Below, in pieces: positions 7,938 through 40,235 of a stretch of 44,001 bases of DNA (its first letter is position 1; each line of letters opens with the position of its first letter). The notes beneath the pieces were generated by a model. That model was not told the DNA's origin and did not search any database. It worked only from the letters and a program-made list of their open reading frames with translations. Location: the NCBI GenBank assembly GCA_000708835.1, contig DF237594.1, forward strand, positions 4,963 through 48,963. The letters are read 5' to 3'. The DNA is from Klebsormidium nitens. Lineage: Eukaryota > Plantae > Klebsormidiophyceae. The position numbers and the translations under genes are program-made.

Positions 7938-7978
7938 GGCCCACAGATGATAGAGATGGAAAATGTGCTGTATATAAC
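7938..7978 (+). promoter_or_regulatory. USE-like box GGCCCACAGA (7938) plus TATATAA (7971), U6-type Pol III promoter candidate
   Basis: Same box and the same 33-nt box-start to TATA-start spacing as at 35637 and 39452; CAACAA at 7995-8000 just before the tRNA-like 5' end. Confidence 0.7.
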
Positions 7979-8006
7979 CAAAGAGGTTTCAGATCAACAA
8001 CGGCAT

Positions 8007-8172
8007 GGGGCTGTAGCTCAACTGGTAGAGCGCCAAGAAACGGATCCGTCCGTAGTGGTGGAAGCTTCTCGCCGCGCGCCGTGAGCTGGCCAAGCCGCTG
8101 CCGGGCTCCGCGCTTTGCCCAGAGACCCTGGGCCGAGTCTGAGAGATGCGGGTTCGAATCCCGCCAGCTCCA
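8007..8172 (+). tRNA. Atypical tRNA-like RNA: Ala-type acceptor stem, intact D and T arms, anticodon arm replaced by ~110-nt structured insert
   Basis: Acceptor GGGGCTG(8007-13)/CAGCTCC(8165-71) with G3:U70 and discriminator A8172; D arm GCTC-AACTGGTA-GAGC; T arm GCGGG-TTCGAAT-CCCGC (8148-64); A box TAGCTCAACTGG and B box GGTTCGAATCC. No canonical anticodon stem-loop, even after removing a 37/38 intron. Confidence 0.8.
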
Positions 8173-8179
8173 CAACCCC

Positions 8180-8183
8180 TTTT
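8180..8183 (+). terminator. Pol III oligo-T terminator candidate
   Basis: TTTT 8 nt after the discriminator, with a further TTT at 8188-8190. Confidence 0.55.
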
Positions 8184-35100: not shown

Positions 35101-35636
35101 CTGCCTTAGCAGAGCTAAGGTTGGACACAATCCGGAAGCTAACGGCACATCAAGGCGCTATCGTGACCGTGCCAAAGCAAGGAAAGCAGGGCTGCGTCCT
35201 AGAGGAGTATCCTTAATCTCAGATGGCTCTGGCTACCGGAAAATATGGTTTCTGCACCAGTATGTACAGTTGTCTCGTCTGAAGAACGATAATATATCTG
35301 CCGTCAGTGACAAATTTCGCATTGGAAAGAATGGAACGGACAACAAGGCGGTAAAAGAACTGTTGCATGAAACCGTCACAATCCAGCAGAAACGTGCGTG
35401 AAGGAAAGGAGTTACTGCGTTTGGGCTCCTGTACAAAACCCAACACTTGGCTTGGCCTGGCCGTGGGCGTTGCCAATTGTCACGTTTCCGAATCATGTTC
35501 CATTCGAGGACCTTGTTTCTGCGGCTTCGCGACATTCGCGCCGTGGCCGACCGTCGTAATTTTGGTGCCCAGGCTTGAAGCCGTTGATTCTGACACGTGG
35601 CGTCATCGGGCGGCTGGACTCGAGCTGAATTCATCT

Positions 35637-35677
35637 GGCCCACAAAGTCTGGTTTTAGCAGAAGACGCCTTTATAAA
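35637..35677 (+). promoter_or_regulatory. USE-like GGCCCACAAAGT plus TTTATAAA, U6-type Pol III promoter candidate (copy A)
   Basis: Box 35637-35648, TATA 35670-35677; predicted +1 at A35700 after C. Confidence 0.7.
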
Positions 35678-35699
35678 CACGAAAACAGCTGCTTTCTCC

Positions 35700-35839
35700 A
35701 ACGCCAGCTAGGCGTTCAGGGCTGCGGTCCCTGTTTTCTATTTCCTTACCGGGCTGCGGTCCCGGTTTTCTGACTTCCTTACCGGGCTGCGGTCCCGGTC
35801 CAGGCTGCGGTCCTGGGGAACACGCGCTACGGGTGATCA
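35700..35839 (+). ncRNA. Unclassified four-hairpin small RNA candidate, copy A
   Basis: 5' hairpin AACGCC-AGCTA-GGCGTT, then hairpins at 35717-33, 35749-65, 35782-98 and 35800-16, each a 5-bp stem with loop CTGCGGT, joined by pyrimidine linkers. Stems show compensatory changes. Confidence 0.7.
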
Positions 35840-36652
35840 CGATCATCATTAGCGCATGCTCCAACATACGTTGCACTTTTGCTGCAGAAGGAAGCTGCTT
35901 GGACTTGGATCGAAATTGCGGCCCTCTTGAAAGTAGTAACCCACCACTGCAAAACTATTCCGTCTGCATCGTAACCTGGAGCAGCACCGCTAAAGCATTC
36001 CTCCCGCATCCTTCCAATCGCGTAACGATATACGATATGCTAGCTGCAGGATCACATGTGTGGGGGAGCTTCTGTATCACACTTATCCACATCGAACAAC
36101 ACAGCATGCATCTAGGAGGAATTTTGGACGCTGAATATGAGTCATCTTGACCTTCTCAAGAGTGTCACTTGAACCCTGCAGCTGTTCAAAACCATGAATC
36201 TGTGTTGTTCAAAAATGTAAAGAACTTGGGTTTGTTCAAAACGGCGGGACTCTATGGCTGAGTATGCGGCCCGGTCCATGGCCCGGCTTTCGAAAAAATA
36301 GCGTCGGCCGCTGGCAAGTTTTGTGGATAAATATCCAGAGTACCCCTGGATTTGTTCAATTTCTCACCTCTTCATATCAGATGAGATCAATCTGTGCTTG
36401 AAACTTTGTTTGTTAAGCGTTCTTTTGTGAAATTCGACATACCTTCCTATGTAAGAAAGGACTTTTGAGAAATACAGGTGTCATTTTGTACGTTCTGGTT
36501 GGAGTTGGAATGATTTGGCGTTGAATCTAAATCAACGAATGTCGTGGTGCTTTTCCGGGGGAGCTCCAGCCCTGGAGCGGGGGGGACTGAAACGGAGAAC
36601 TGATTACGGCCGCCTACAGGACACGTGGCCTTAGTCGAACGGTTCGAGAATT

Positions 36653-37399
36653 TTAGGAGAGCGCGCCTCGGGTCACACCAGTAGAGCCCCCGAGGCGGCC
36701 CGCACGCGCCCGACTACCGTTCAGGACCGCGCACCGCACCACGGCGGCCTGCTGAGAGTCGCGCGCCGCGGCCGCGGCGAAGCGCTCACCGCACTTCCTG
36801 CAAACGAACGCCACGTCGCACGCGCGCACGTGCGCGAGCAGCGGCTTCAGCGAGCACAGGTCGAGGTCGCGGGTGAGGCGGCGCGCGAGCGCGCCCAGGG
36901 AATAATACCGGGGGTCCGAGCTTTCGAGAGACGTGTCTCGCAAGTGGGCAATCAATTTCGCCCCGGCAGAGAAGTCCAGAAAGCAAACCGCGCACTGGTA
37001 GACGGTTGTGCAGCCTCCCAGCAGGGGGTTGGCCTGGAGACCGTGCAAGGGTGGGGCGCGACAGACGGACCAAGAACGAAGTGGCGCGAGGCGCTTGGTT
37101 CTTCCGTTTCCATTGCTTTGCCGTGCACTTTGCTGCTGCTCGGCCGGCCCAACGGCCCCACAGGTGCTGCCACATGGCGGCAGCCCACAGGAGGTCTGCA
37201 GGTAGCCAAGCGGGAACTTCTCCTCGCAGATTTGGGACACTTCCTTCCGTCCTCGAGGCCCCACGCGGCTTCGGCGGCCGGAACTAGAAGTCACTTCTTG
37301 ACAGAACGCCGGACACGCTCCATCACTGTGGCCGGGAGGAAGTGCGTTTGAATCGAGGAAATAGCGGCGCTTTCCAGGCAGCGTTTGGGGAAAGCACAC
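36653..37399 (-). CDS. C2H2-like zinc-finger protein, copy A (possibly pseudogenising)
   Basis: YQCAVCFLDFSAGAKLIAHLRD (C-x2-C-x12-H) and FVCRKCGERFAAAAARDSQ (His lost). True start not resolved; TATA-like motif on the minus strand near 37555. Confidence 0.5.
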   Translation of the reverse strand: MCFPQTLPGKRRYFLDSNALPPGHSDGACPAFCQEVTSSSGRRSRVGPRGRKEVSQICEEKFPLGYLQTSCGLPPCGSTCGAVGPAEQQQSARQSNGNGRTKRLAPLRSWSVCRAPPLHGLQANPLLGGCTTVYQCAVCFLDFSAGAKLIAHLRDTSLESSDPRYYSLGALARRLTRDLDLCSLKPLLAHVRACDVAFVCRKCGERFAAAAARDSQQAAVVRCAVLNGSRARAGRLGGSTGVTRGALS

Positions 37400-39451
37400 G
37401 TTAATAATCTTTCAAGACTTTCCGTCTAGGAGTCGCTCAAACATTTGGCAGCGATTCCAACTGGCAGCCCTTCTGGCTTGCATAGCATGTTTGCCCTTGG
37501 GGAGTAGATCCAGCGGATCCTGATCGAAGTCGGTGTGTAGATGGTATGCATATTATAAAGCTTGAATTCACGACTTCAGGCTTAGCTGAACGCCGTACAT
37601 TTTGCTTAAGGACGTCGCGAAGAGCCGGCACGAAGTCAAGGTGGCATCTCAAGAGTACGCTAGCATGGTGCAAAAGGAGACTGAATATTTTCTTTAGGGG
37701 CTGGTCCCGTCTTTGAGTTATTGCAACAGTTGCGCGCCACGTGGTCCGGTCTGAGGAAAGTGGCTCGTCGCTACAGATGGCTGTCGGGAAGGTACAGAAT
37801 CTTTGTTTCAGTCTTTTTGGATTGACTCGCATTTGGGAACTGAACCATTCCCTCTTTGTAAGAAGTGGTACCACGTTGCAGAATCACGTTAACGGTGTTG
37901 GAGACCTGTGACTCAAGATTGATCCATTTTCAAGCGAACCGGTTGGGATCCATGAGGAAGTAAGAATGAACGTCAAAGATTACTTAGCCCCAAACTAGAC
38001 GGTCTTTTCTTCCTTCCTTCTCGCTTTGCAAGATGTTCTCCAAAGTTTTCTGCTCTATGACCGGAACACTATATCGTCGAAGCACAAGAGTGGGAGCTTG
38101 ACGTGGAAAGCCTCATGCGAAGAAGGTTTGAAAGGGGGAAATCTTTTCTCGTGATAGCCCCAAGTGCGCTTCGAAAGGCTTCAAGTGAGAACAGGCTCAT
38201 CACGACTCGCGTCAGAGACCGTTTGCTTCTAACCGCCCATACTGTTGACTTGTGGGTGCCCTGAATTTCGCTGCAGAGGTGGCTCTGCTAGGCGGCTTTG
38301 TCGAGCGCTGTGCCGTTTGGAAGGTTCCATTTCGTCTCTTAGGAACCCTGGCCACCAGCCTAAAAAGTGCCAGTGCTGATCACTGGGCCATTATGGGCAG
38401 CTTTGGAAAGGGCTAAGTTCTGCGTCATAATAGCGCTGCTCGATCTCGGCCCACAGAACTTCGATTCCAGGGTAACCTTTCGACTCGCCTTCCCATCATA
38501 TGTAAGCGGAAGGGGCTACGCGACGACTGTAATCTGGTCCAAGTCGCCAAAGTTTGACCAGGTTTTCTACTCGTCCTTCGACGTCCTGAAGGTCCTAGCT
38601 GAGTACGCGCAATTGCAAGTATGAGCATGGTGAGGAAGTCGTTACAAATCAGCTGAAGTTTCGCGAAGTTGGGAAGAGAAGATGGGGTTTGAGCAGCGCT
38701 TACAACAAGTCCAATCAGAGTCGAAAATTGAAAAACAAAGCATGGATGAAGTTAGGTTCTTCTAAGAGCTGAGAGGTTCTAGAGAACAGTGCCTGGCTAA
38801 AGACTCGAGAAGCTGTCTCCTACACTAGTGTATGGCATGGGGTTGAGATGCTCGAGAAGAAAAGTGGCGGTTTGATCTTGGAAAAGGTGCTGATGAATCA
38901 TAACACCTATCTGCTGGCAGGGCCATCAGTTGGTTGAAATGAAAAGTGCTACTGATTACGTTAATGATTTCGACAACGAACACGTGCAATAATCTGCTGA
39001 GCTGCCGGCTTAAGAAGGCTGTCAGGCTGTCACCGCCTAGGCTACATCGCCTTTCGTCGTGGATCTCTTTCGAAGCTTACTTTAACTTCTAAGCTCCTAA
39101 AAGTTTGCCGAGCTTCCTAAAGGGCCCGTTAAGCTGTACTTGCAACCATCCCATGCCTGCAAATGCAGCTAAGACCCTTTGAAAAACAAAGCTAGCTCCT
39201 GTAGATGATGTTCAGACTCAAACACGCGGATCTGAAGCGAAGAAGGGATGTCATTAATGCGGTCTTGAAATCCGCTTTCTGTCTACAATTCTTCGGGCCG
39301 CCCCGGGCTCGTTGCCGACAGTCCGTTTGCGTTCCGAGACAATATCGTCGCGCGTCGTGGGCGACCGTCGCACTGTCGGGTGCCTTCTTAGAACCGTCAG
39401 ATTCGCCAAGTGGCATCATCGGACGGCTCGAAACTAAAAACCTATCCTTTG

Positions 39452-39494
39452 GGCCCACAAAGTTTGTTCTGCACGTAAGACAGCTTTATATATA
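39452..39494 (+). promoter_or_regulatory. USE-like GGCCCACAAAGT plus TTTATATATA, U6-type Pol III promoter candidate (copy B)
   Basis: Box 39452-39463, TATA from 39485; predicted +1 at A39515; spacings identical to copy A. Confidence 0.7.
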
Positions 39495-39514
39495 CAAATG
39501 CCGCCCCTCTAGGC

Positions 39515-39653
39515 AACGCCAGCTAGGCGTTCAGGGCTGCGGTCCCTGGCTCCTATTTCCTTACCGGGCTGCGGACCCGGTTTTCTGACTTCCTACCGGG
39601 CTGCGGTCCCGGTCCAGGCTGCGGTCCTGGGGAACACGCGCTACGGGTGATCA
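39515..39653 (+). ncRNA. Unclassified four-hairpin small RNA candidate, copy B
   Basis: Hairpins at 39532-48, 39564-80 (loop CTGCGGA), 39596-612 and 39614-30; five differences from copy A, all in unpaired positions. Confidence 0.7.
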
Positions 39654-39747
39654 GTTGACATAATTAGCGCATGTTCCAACATATGTTGCACCATTTGCTG
39701 CCGAGTAAACAATCCGCTTGGATTTCGAACTTGCTGTCTCTTTTAAA

Positions 39748-40235
39748 CAGGGCGTGCCCCTATAAGACCCCTTTTCCCGAGACTAAATTGTGCCCGGGGA
39801 TTTGGGGTTTAGCATAGTGGTAGAGTGCAGTCCCGCATGTCCAAAAGCTTCTTTTACGTCCTTTTTGTGTACCCCGCACAGCGGCGCACATCGATTCACA
39901 GTGCTTTCCTATAAAGTGAACTCGTTACGGTCTAAGATTCAATCCATGGACCTAGCAACCTAAATGGCGTACTTTCAGGCGCTCTGCGGCGCTGGTCCCA
40001 TGACTTTCACAGCGATCTGATATTTGGCCGTGGCTCTCCTCCCGGACTCGGTGCGTTTGCAATCTGCCGTACGCTTTTGCTCGATAACTTCGACCGGTCG
40101 CTGAATCGGAAGCTCCAGGTCACTCCGTCGATTCACTCTCGCGCCCTCAGATCGACGGTCCGCGGCTTGACGGATTGTCACCGACGGCTGCCGCGAACCT
40201 CTTCCGTCCGGGTGATTACGCGTAATCAAACTCCC
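39748..40235. mobile_element. 488-bp insertion flanked by 8-bp direct repeat CTTTTAAA
   Basis: CTTTTAAA at 39740-47 and 40236-43; copy A has a single related site (ctcttgaaagtag, ~35925). Starts with CAGGG; no matching right TIR. Confidence 0.5.

Follow-up and report, generated by a model that had tools for sequence, protein, structure and literature searches.

Two copies of a small-RNA gene

The window, meaning the whole 44,001-nucleotide stretch of Klebsormidium nitens DNA that was analysed, contains two copies of a small-RNA gene, termed A and B. Their features, all on the plus strand, are as follows.

35542..35556, plus strand: far-upstream box CGTGGCCGACCGTCG of copy A, a block conserved between copies A and B within an otherwise diverged flank
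35597..35615 (copy A) and 39409-39427 (copy B), plus strand: distal promoter box GTGGCRTCATCGGRCGGCT, identical in both copies except at two R positions
35637..35647 (copy A) and 39452-39462 (copy B), plus strand: USE-like box GGCCCACAAAG, invariant in a three-promoter alignment
35670..35677 (copy A) and 39486-39495 (copy B), plus strand: TATA box TTTATAAA, in copy A about 28 bp upstream of the first conserved base, 35700
35700..35880, plus strand: transcribed RNA of copy A, about 175-181 nt, covered by RNA contigs; near-identity of copies A and B begins exactly at 35700
35700..35716, plus strand: 5′ hairpin AACGCC/GGCGUU with a 5-nt loop, present in every predicted fold
35717..35733, plus strand: hairpin 1, CAGGG / CUGCGGU / CCCUG, with pair 2 A-U instead of C-G
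35734..35748, plus strand: linker 1, pyrimidine-rich, variable between copies, with a T4 run in copy A only; shorter in organism C (a dip in depth, and gaps)
35749..35765, plus strand: hairpin 2, CCGGG / CUGCGGU / CCCGG, with pair 4 changed to A-U in organism C
35766..35781, plus strand: linker 2, pyrimidine-rich, with a T4 run in both window copies that is not among the variable sites in the runs compared and is crossed by RNA contigs
35782..35798, plus strand: hairpin 3, CCGGG / CUGCGGU / CCCGG
35800..35816, plus strand: hairpin 4, CCAGG / CUGCGGU / CCUGG, with pair 3 A-U instead of G-C
35817..35862, plus strand: long 3′ hairpin of 46 nt, GGA.CA.GCGCUA ... UAGCGC.UG.UCC, with a variable tip, found in all folds
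35863..35880, plus strand: single-stranded tail AACAUACGUUGCAC followed by T4, a candidate Pol III terminator
39515..39697, plus strand: transcribed RNA of copy B, whose tip sequence type is found in RNA-library contig X11
39532-48, 39564-80, 39596-612 and 39614-30, plus strand: the four hairpins of copy B, with the same four stems as copy A

Four 5-bp hairpins closing CTGCGGT, described in an original prediction made from the sequence alone, are present at 35717-35816 and repeated at 39532-39630. Between 35700 and 35839, the only differences between the copies are three sites in linker 1 (35734, 35735 and 35737), position 35760, and one T deletion in linker 2. Pairwise comparison within this interval places all of these differences at unpaired sites, as that prediction also held. 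Position 35760 is the last loop base of hairpin 2, and it changes from U in copy A to A in copy B. The predicted end of the unit at 35839, giving 140 nt, was wrong. The two copies stay alike from 35700 as far as about 35876-35885, which makes the RNA about 175-180 nt long. The tail words TTTGCTGC are retained in every paralogue seen.

Transcription

The small-RNA gene is real and its RNA is produced. Unstranded contigs from four RNA libraries of the same organism, in sequencing runs typed only as ‘RNA?’, are restricted to 35711-35880, with depth zero on both flanks, which disposes of the possibility of a gene that has no transcript. Transcript 3′ ends map to 35873, with an A/G-rich tail beyond it, and to 35876, with adapter sequence beyond it, and the RNA contig of one paralogue extends 57 nt beyond the T4. 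Words of the RNA also occur in a lake-water run and in runs of RNA type whose labels name organisms C, F and H; for organisms C and F, contigs were aligned to the RNA.

It had been cautioned that an internal TTTT, at 35766-69 and in copy A also at 35734-37, could end Pol III transcripts at about 70 nt. Both runs are real, and an internal T4 at +67 is present in A and B alike. However, RNA contigs run across both, so that any product of about 70 nt would not be the sole product. The T4 at 35877-80 is found in copy A and in most of the paralogues compared; the corresponding run in copy B and in organism C is no longer than T3.

Both copies are preceded by a USE-like box and a TATA box at fixed spacing, as first proposed. 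The layout consists of a GGCCCACA box, a TATA box 24-25 bp further on (24 bp in copy A, 25 bp in copy B) and a start about 28 nt past the TATA. A third paralogue has TATATA at the same distance. In the window, the combination of CCCACA and TATA occurs 3 times, compared to 0.12 expected. A tRNA-like gene at 8007 has the same promoter geometry, with a gap of 22 bp, and ends in T4. ACCGTC-like words, which resemble the far-upstream box, recur in the paralogue flanks and in the promoter of this tRNA-like gene. In organism D, which has many copies, depth within the promoter is greatest at the distal box, where it is 600-640.

On inspection by eye against the plant consensus, copies A and B share no conserved downstream motif that resembles the Pol II 3′ box. 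In Arabidopsis, a USE-TATA gap of 23-24 bp marks Pol III genes and one of 32-34 bp marks Pol II genes, while in green algae a TATA box alone marks Pol III (PMC8287931). Because the spacing of the promoters fits Pol III, transcription by this polymerase is considered probable. The plant Site II motif is TGGGCY, of which GGCCCA is the reverse (PMC4660826), and GGCCCA could be a Site II element instead of a USE.

Covariation in the hairpin array

The loop core GGCTGCGGTCC occurs 8 times, in two loci, compared to 0.83 occurrences expected in the whole window, and a scan of the whole window found no such hairpins elsewhere. All 20 of 20 stem cells are Watson-Crick, and 2 of the 5 pairs have changed on both sides. 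There are three stem sequences in the window; a fourth, CCGAG/CUCGG, results from a double change in organism C (G35752A with C35762U), which is the third compensated change. This agrees with the earlier observation that the stems differ by compensated double changes only. The base for covariation is small (4 distinct hairpin rows and one change in one relative), and the covariation score was equalled in 38 of 500 shuffles. One variant paralogue keeps both stems and has shortened or different loops (CUGCCG and CUGCG, of 6 and 5 nt), so the identity of the CUGCGGU loop is not absolute. On comparison of these sequences, the view that the stems are maintained by pairing rather than by sequence is supported.

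Copy number and selection

The depth of DNA words is 200-325 within the RNA compared to 22.6 in the flanks, which corresponds to about 10-14 copies. The depth reaches about 1500 in organism D, and depth points to more copies in a relative than in this genome. Exact 31-base words of the RNA occur in runs labelled as at least 10 other organisms.

Interspecies divergence is 1-3% of sites in the RNA and about 21-23% in the promoter. In organism B there are 14 substitutions in 62 nt of promoter compared to 4 in 140 nt of RNA, and in organism F there are 12 in 58 nt compared to 2 in 166 nt. This means that the RNA evolves about 8-17 times more slowly than its promoter. Of the six RNA substitutions in organisms B and F, those outside loops and linkers either leave a G.U pair or disrupt the terminal base pair of the 5′ hairpin. 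For example, the 5′ hairpin of organism B retains a G.U pair at C35704U and carries A35706U in its loop. The 3′ hairpin is the deepest-covered part among copies in all organisms; its indels are confined to the tip at 35839-35843, and A35836G in organisms D and F retains a G.U pair. The linkers, too, are better conserved between species than the promoter is. These sequence comparisons show strong purifying selection along the whole length of the RNA, and the locus very probably represents a real, new and conserved gene family.

Local hairpins or one long rod

The stems of the four-hairpin fold in the original prediction, and their compensation, are real, but another fold has the lowest energy. 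In the energy model, a nested rod comes out better by 14.3 kcal/mol (-83.0 compared to -68.7 kcal/mol), and the equilibrium ensemble gives the local hairpin pairs probabilities below 0.001. In the rod, hairpin 1 pairs with hairpin 4 and hairpin 2 with hairpin 3, linker 1 forms a bulge and linker 2 forms the apical loop. This one long imperfect hairpin could itself be the functional shape, or a Dicer-like substrate for small RNAs.

The rod is both the minimum-energy and the centroid fold (z = -5.7), and it is also the consensus fold of both copies. With G.U pairs allowed, the CUGCGG of the loop is self-complementary, and the A and U introduced by the changes in hairpins 1 and 4 are also able to pair with each other in the rod (35718-35814 and 35732-35802). 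Moreover, the weak Rfam similarities of the RNA are solely to microRNA precursors, the best being mir-665 (E = 0.11; 19.9 bits compared to a gathering score of 52). In Cuscuta, microRNA loci driven by U6-like or snRNA-type promoters are reported (bioRxiv 10.1101/2022.07.06.498962), which is a precedent for a precursor with such a promoter.

However, a rod of this kind is expected in silico from any tandem array of palindromic hairpins. To form, it needs six G.U pairs along with several bulges; the local stems consist entirely of Watson-Crick pairs. Each compensated change costs the local fold 2-3 kcal/mol and the rod 8-9 kcal/mol: the long hairpin is predicted, but every natural stem change weakens it. 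In organism C, the rod acquires an A.C mismatch while hairpin 2 is still perfect. In addition, the best conservation across species is in the 3′ hairpin, which lies outside the rod, and full-length contigs are found. A functional rod or precursor is considered improbable, and the local hairpins are probably the selected fold.

Relation to known RNA classes

At the gathering thresholds of Rfam 15 neither copy has a match, and searches at E<=10, one covering 4.6 kb and one, with lax filters, covering 191 nt, returned sub-threshold microRNA-like noise only. The check proposed at the outset thus matched no family at gathering or permissive thresholds. The RNA could instead belong to a known class (snRNA, snoRNA including the U3-like type, 7SK, Y RNA or vault-like RNA) and have diverged too far for current models to recognize it. 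This reading would fit the multiple copies, the USE/TATA promoter, the length of about 180 nt and the words in at least 10 organisms, all of which are typical of a housekeeping snRNA. Against this stands the blank Rfam result. Direct reading of the RNA for consensus motifs showed no Sm site, well-placed C/D or H/ACA boxes, ACAGAGA box or terminal stem, and this also speaks against a known class. A telomerase template was sought in both copies as any permutation of CCCTAAA, CCCTAAAA, CCTAAAA, CCCTAAAAA or CCCTAA plus one base, and none was found. Taken together, membership in a known class has only a slim chance.

Individual candidates were rejected on similar grounds. Telomerase RNA is ruled out, as the gene is multicopy and its RNA has no template. 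U6 and U6atac do not fit, since the ACAGAGA box is missing and the short words shared with them come in another order. The AUGAUGA word of a C/D snoRNA lies on the minus strand only, the 3′ hairpin has no tandem G.A arrangement that would make it a K-turn, and the CNGG loop of Smaug or Vts1 gives no fit.

Searches beyond known families were also negative. A metagenome scan for two loop cores with a variable gap, a loose pattern, gave 120 loci, none of them similar to this RNA by BLAST; one of these loci, L027, was rejected as a GC-rich bacterial sequence with two hairpins by chance. Viral contigs gave 0 matches, or lone chance hairpins in phage contigs, and prokaryotic genomes gave 0 matches. 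A 73-aa reverse-strand open reading frame that spans the RNA was searched as a protein, and nothing was found. Among 26 open frames compared with Pfam, and for the longest of them also with the protein atlas, no domain was credible. Full-text literature searches, by loop sequence as well as on Pol III RNAs of streptophytes, gave no description of this RNA. The locus is judged to belong to a real and apparently undescribed family of Pol III-type RNAs.

Proposed function

The following explanation accounts for the architecture. The family consists of multicopy genes for a structured non-coding RNA, each with its own snRNA-type promoter. Pol III would mostly pass the two weak internal T4 runs and stop at the T-run after GCAC. 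The RNA would fold co-transcriptionally, so that a 5′ hairpin is followed by four GC-rich hairpins of 5 bp, spaced by linkers rich in pyrimidines, and then by the long 3′ hairpin, which leaves a free tail. Each of the four hairpins would display the same CUGCGGU loop, possibly as a UGCG tetraloop with a bulged U, and a single RNA-binding protein or domain would thereby find several docking sites on one molecule. On this view, an abundant RNP would be built around the RNA as its multivalent core, with a role as a scaffold or as a titrating decoy, and the 3′ hairpin and U-tail may serve stability and assembly, e.g., through La or LSm-type binding. The probability of this whole explanation, mechanism included, is put at about 0.45. 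The role as a multivalent protein platform, which is read from the architecture alone, is likewise held tentatively, at somewhat less than even odds. A broader proposal is rather unlikely: that the RNA is a lineage-wide eukaryotic Pol III class which works like CsrB/RsmZ, with four identical hairpins, conserved through pairing, that capture several copies of one protein, possibly a reader of anticodon arms, and that it is part of a wider type-3-promoter set in this alga with anticodon-less tRNA-Ala-like RNAs, built by modular hairpin expansion.

A special case of the decoy model is that the hairpins copy the anticodon stem-loop of a tRNA, the closest being the arginine tRNA reading CGN, and would bind or distract a synthetase, a modification enzyme or an anticodon nuclease. 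The 5-bp stem, 7-nt loop, C32, U33, GCG and G37 fit in 8 of 8 hairpins, and the genome also has Pol III tRNA-like RNAs that lack an anticodon arm. As a general precedent, the operator of E. coli thrS binds its synthetase through mimics of the anticodon arm. However, position 38 holds a U (an A in one copy), the loops of the variant paralogue have 5 and 6 nt, and a UGCG tetraloop with a bulge is equally possible. About 1 random loop in 16 meets the three fixed positions, so the anticodon-arm fit is weak evidence, and this mimicry is considered quite improbable.

Alternatively, the loops or linkers may base-pair with other RNAs, either by loop-loop kissing of CUGCGG between copies or by pairing of the linker sequence UUCCUUAC with a GUAAGGAA-type sequence. 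CUGCGG pairs with itself through 4 G-C and 2 G.U pairs. UUCCUUAC is found in both linkers of copy A, is complementary to a GUAAG 5′ splice site, and is similar to the U12-type branch site UCCUUAAC once the bulged A is left out (consensus UCCUUAACU; PMC2846911). The conservation of the linkers relative to the promoter also favors such a role. However, the match was spotted post hoc, and a self-complementary 6-mer is expected in about 1 of 10 loops. In copy B and other paralogues, linker 2 lacks one U and reads CUUCCUACC, linker 1 of organism C is shortened, and the loops of the variant paralogue have no self-complementarity. Base-pairing as the function is given little likelihood.

Finally, a repeat, SINE, transposon remnant or pseudogene family with no RNA function of its own would explain the many copies per genome and the internal direct repeats, but is very improbable: the copies compared, namely A, B, the third paralogue and those of organism D, retain the upstream promoter, which retroposition would not carry, and are therefore not the bare retroposed copies that a transposon origin was expected to leave; the RNA evolves far more slowly than that promoter, its stem changes are compensated, and there are no terminal inverted repeats or flanking duplications around copy A.

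Significance

To our knowledge, the set of type-3 Pol III genes outside animals and a few model plants has been thought small and essentially complete, with U6, U3, 7SL, MRP and telomerase RNA. The locus adds a further, abundant-looking multicopy RNA to this set, and its design of repeated hairpins with one loop is not catalogued in Rfam. A role as a multivalent protein platform, if it holds, would make the RNA a eukaryotic analogue of the titrating RNAs of bacteria and would hint at an unknown RNP in streptophyte-type algae. The defined promoter, with distal boxes, USE, TATA and start site, could serve for guide-RNA expression in the lineage. In addition, the array is a clean test case for local hairpins versus an inter-repeat duplex.

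Comparison with known systems

The gene is most directly compared with the USE- and TATA-containing type-3 Pol III genes for U6, U3, 7SL, MRP and telomerase RNA. It shares with them the CCCACA-core element, a TATA box 24-25 bp on, a start about 28 nt after the TATA, a 3′ T-run (here a candidate terminator), small multicopy genes and a low share in poly(A) libraries. In contrast, its transcript matches none of their RNAs and has no telomere template, and the gene has two internal T4 runs and extra conserved distal boxes around -85 to -105 and around -145 to -160.

Bacterial CsrB and RsmZ also carry several short hairpins with the same loop and unstructured linkers, a design suggestive of the multivalent capture of a single protein. 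However, the GGA motif of CsrA/RsmE sites is absent from the CUGCGGU loop, and here the gene is eukaryotic and nuclear, with an snRNA promoter and four sites only. The likeness is one of design, not of descent, and the RNA would at most function in the manner of such a sponge.

The Xist A-repeat has short GC-rich hairpins with U-rich spacers, is ambiguous between local and inter-repeat duplexes, and is a multivalent protein platform. It belongs to a mammalian Pol II long non-coding RNA, has 7-8 units and has no sequence relation to the algal array, but the ambiguity of the fold is the same. The thrS operator likewise has a repeated 5-bp stem with a 7-nt loop, a pyrimidine-U start and a purine at 37; it lies in an mRNA leader, whereas here four copies lie in a stand-alone, putative Pol III RNA.

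A hairpin with a tetraloop and a bulge is a shape often read by a dedicated protein, as in operators of the MS2/PP7 kind. The algal hairpins come from a cellular gene with no sequence relation to those operators, and their bulge would lie on the 3′ side, one pair below the loop, at the position that is the sole hairpin difference between copies A and B (U to A). Nevertheless, the fold model also allows the 7-nt loop to close with a C-G pair, and in that case the hairpins would share with these operators a 6-bp stem, a tetraloop (here UGCG) and a single bulge.

Architecture of the Conserved RNA

The gene present as copy A (RNA from 35700) and copy B (RNA from 39515) gives rise to an RNA of ~175–180 nt that is transcribed, multicopy and strongly constrained, its hairpins being kept by pairing and its loops by sequence. 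Base-by-base reading of 35500-36000 (copy A) and 39320-39820 (copy B) matched the four-hairpin array of the original prediction base for base in both copies. The core GGCTGCGGTCC occurs 8 times in these copies, against 0.83 expected window-wide, and a hairpin scan found no further hairpins of the type elsewhere in the window. In an alignment of both loci, near-identity begins exactly at 35700 and continues to about 35876, past the end first placed at 35839; the word TTTGCTGC is conserved in both loci beyond ~35876. Upstream of 35700, identity falls to separate blocks.

Features of the gene (+ strand, copy A unless stated; 5' hairpin to hairpin 4 and the copy B array from sequence reading, the others from the A/B alignment)
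35542-56, +: conserved upstream block CGTGGCCGACCGTCG
35597-615 (copy B 39409-39427), +: conserved upstream block GTGGCRTCATCGGRCGGCT
35637-47, +: conserved USE-like block GGCCCACAAAG
35670-77, +: conserved TATA block TTTATA
RNA start, +: conserved CAACG
35700-35716, +: 5' hairpin, AACGCC / 5-nt loop / GGCGUU
35717-33, +: hairpin 1, CAGGG/CCCUG, loop CUGCGGU
35734-48, +: linker 1, pyrimidine-rich
35749-65, +: hairpin 2, CCGGG/CCCGG, loop CUGCGGU
35766-81, +: linker 2, pyrimidine-rich
35782-98, +: hairpin 3, CCGGG/CCCGG, loop CUGCGGU
35800-16, +: hairpin 4, CCAGG/CCUGG, loop CUGCGGU
35817-35862, +: 3' hairpin, 46 nt
3' of the 46-nt hairpin, +: single-stranded tail AACAUACGUUGCAC
39532-39630, +: copy B hairpin array, repeating that of copy A

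When the eight hairpin units are aligned, stem cells are 100% Watson-Crick and 2 of 5 pairs are changed on both sides, bearing out the predicted double changes; the shuffle control for this covariation (38/500 shuffles) is weak, as only 4 rows are distinct. Across 35700-35839 the copies differ, as predicted, only at unpaired sites, namely at 3 positions in linker 1, at the final base of the hairpin 2 loop and by a single T in linker 2. In the 3' hairpin, indels vary the tip (35839-35848) and the stem is conserved.

Transcription and Copy Number

Transcripts, whose absence would have told against the original prediction, were found. Contigs of three RNA-type runs from the source organism (organism A), placed on 35560-35960, cover only 35700/35711 to 35880, with zero depth on either flank. 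These runs are typed only "RNA?", their contigs are strandless and depth is low (3-9), as is expected in ordinary libraries for non-polyadenylated Pol III RNAs (PMC8287931). One contig ends at 35876, followed by adapter, and one of run X6 ends at 35873, followed by a heteropolymeric A/G-rich tail, which indicates defined 3' ends within the T-run 35877-80 or immediately ahead of it. The A-rich tail, 3' on the + strand, fits the promoter orientation; it may also reflect the tailing of an intermediate in decay or processing. One paralogue's contig extends 57 nt past the terminal T4. The internal TTTT suggested as a terminator at ~70 nt is real, but RNA contigs cross both such runs (35734-37 and 35766-69), which therefore do not stop all transcripts.

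In a DNA run matching the window, word depth is 200-325 over the RNA versus 22.6 over the flanks, corresponding to roughly 10–14 copies. A third paralogue carries TATATA at the same distance (read off a contig overhang at 35699). A retroposed repeat was rejected: copies keep their promoter, evolution is much slower in the RNA than in that promoter, and none of the flanking repeats that promoterless transposon copies would show were seen around copy A.

Conservation in Other Organisms

Exact 31-base words of the RNA occur in runs labelled as other organisms, B–I with a 401-nt query and additionally J–L with a 181-nt query, and in lake-water and wastewater samples. Relatives' contigs were compared at 80% likeness, their sequences being known through difference tables only. 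Organism B has 14 substitutions in 62 nt of promoter and 4 in 140 nt of RNA; organism F has 12 in 58 nt and 2 in 166 nt. In organism D copies are numerous (summed depth reaching about 1500), and the distal promoter box too is deeply covered.

The RNA substitutions are structurally neutral or nearly so: C35704U and A35836G give G.U pairs, A35706U sits in the 5' hairpin loop, C35770U and C35774U fall in linker 2, and U35715G disrupts the 5' hairpin's terminal pair. In organism C (168-nt contig, RNA run), G35752A and C35762U together replace the G-C at pair 4 of hairpin 2 by A-U, a compensated change that arose independently. A variant paralogue in organisms A and D keeps stems CCGGG/CCCGG and CCAGG/CCUGG with loops CUGCCG and CUGCG; these shortened-loop hairpins adjoin without a spacer. 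The variant lies outside the window (contig overhang at 35816) and links the region of the distal box with the 3' domain.

Promoter and Polymerase

The pattern CCCACA, 18-40 nt, TATAWA has 3 sites in the window versus 0.12 expected, and both copies fit it, confirming the predicted USE-like box and TATA at fixed spacing. The third site belongs to a tRNA-like gene with its RNA at 8007:

7938-8183, +: tRNA-like gene, GGCCCACA box 7938-48, TATA 7971, T4 8180-83 (sequence, Rfam)

The three promoters share GGCCCACA, TATA and CAACG at the start, with box-to-TATA gaps of 24 and 25 bp (copies A and B) and 22 bp (tRNA-like gene). In Arabidopsis, gaps of 23-24 bp specify Pol III and 32-34 bp Pol II, and green-algal Pol III promoters are marked by having a TATA box at all (PMC8287931). 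Downstream, no Pol II 3' box-like motif is conserved between A and B (by eye, against the plant consensus), and T4 ends most paralogues compared. On these grounds, transcription by Pol III is the best reading, with a probability of about 0.8. Against it stand the internal T4 at +67 in both window copies, the T3 only at the end of copy B and organism C, and the fact that GGCCCA equally corresponds to a reversed Site II motif.

Further upstream than the USE lie two conserved boxes, one spanning about -85 to -105, the other -145 to -160. Of the whole promoter, the distal box is conserved best across the many copies of a related organism, and a weaker version (GATCGACGGTTGGC, GCCGTC) precedes the tRNA-like gene. 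In this lineage the boxes may form an enhancer-type element of type-3 genes.

The Rfam tRNA model scores 44.9 bits on the tRNA-like gene (acceptor, D and T arms, 8007-8172), and ARAGORN called no tRNA there. Its acceptor stem has G3.U70 and A73, the alanine identity set, and in place of the anticodon arm there are 109 nt of hairpins; the predicted fold keeps the three arms around this multi-hairpin insert. The window holds three Pol III-type genes. It has a GC content of about 52%, with long open frames frequent on both strands; Pfam gave no credible domain in 26 open frames (140-372 aa), and the window looks gene-poor or composed of short exons. Between the copies, a GC-rich hairpin (36770-36823, -) matches mir-4888 below threshold (25.2 bits versus 90, E = 0.27), probably by chance.

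Local Hairpins or a Nested Rod

The RNAfold optimum is a nested rod pairing hairpin 1 with 4 and 2 with 3 (z = -5.7), its loops pairing mutually via G.U pairs. It is also the consensus fold of copies A and B, and forcing four local hairpins yields an equilibrium probability < 0.001. A rod, or loop-loop kissing, is a live alternative. Palindromic units arrayed in tandem will always give a rod in silico, so it was asked which fold natural variation protects.

Predicted energies (kcal/mol)
Four identical stems (hypothetical): rod -91.2, local -71.7
Real sequence: rod -83.0, local -68.7
Organism-C change added: rod -73.6, local -66.6

Every compensated change destabilises the rod by 8-9 kcal/mol and the local fold by 2-3, and the organism-C change introduces an A.C mismatch into the rod while hairpin 2 stays perfect. 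Because of these unequal costs, this mismatch and the all-Watson-Crick local stems, local hairpins are likely the selected structure; the rod might still be a functional shape or precursor. The model closes a C-G within the loop, giving a UGCG tetraloop with a bulged U, and the sole A/B hairpin difference (U to A) falls at this bulge.

Identity and Possible Function

Rfam 15 gave no match at gathering thresholds, and none at E<=10 on 4.6 kb or 191 nt. With the RNA contigs and Pol III-like promoter spacing, this largely supports the predicted novel Pol III small RNA; a very divergent member of a known RNA class is a rival reading. Direct reading against known motifs found no Sm site, well-placed C/D or H/ACA boxes, ACAGAGA box or terminal stem. 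Telomerase RNA was rejected, the sequence having no telomere-template word. Exact-pattern scans found no match in prokaryotic genomes and single chance hairpins only in viral collections.

A decoy or scaffold function, as originally proposed, is plausible. The simplest reading of identical hairpins with conserved loops and spacing is that they would serve as repeated docking sites for one putative RNA-binding protein, with the 5' hairpin, 3' hairpin and U-tail contributing to stability and assembly. RNA-RNA pairing is a rival mode, by way of either the UUCCUUAC linkers or the loops, which are self-complementary. The linker has a likeness to the U12-type branch site UCCUUAACU (PMC2846911), but linker 2 no longer carries this motif intact in copy B and other paralogues. 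The hairpins may instead mimic an anticodon arm, whose layout C-U-GCG-G-U on 5 bp matches. Comparison systems include the Xist A-repeat, the thrS operator, the MS2 operator and the U12 sequence. The bacterial CsrB/RsmZ RNAs have a like design of repeated identical hairpins, but carry GGA in their loops; the CUGCGGU loop lacks it, and the RNA is therefore not a member of that family.
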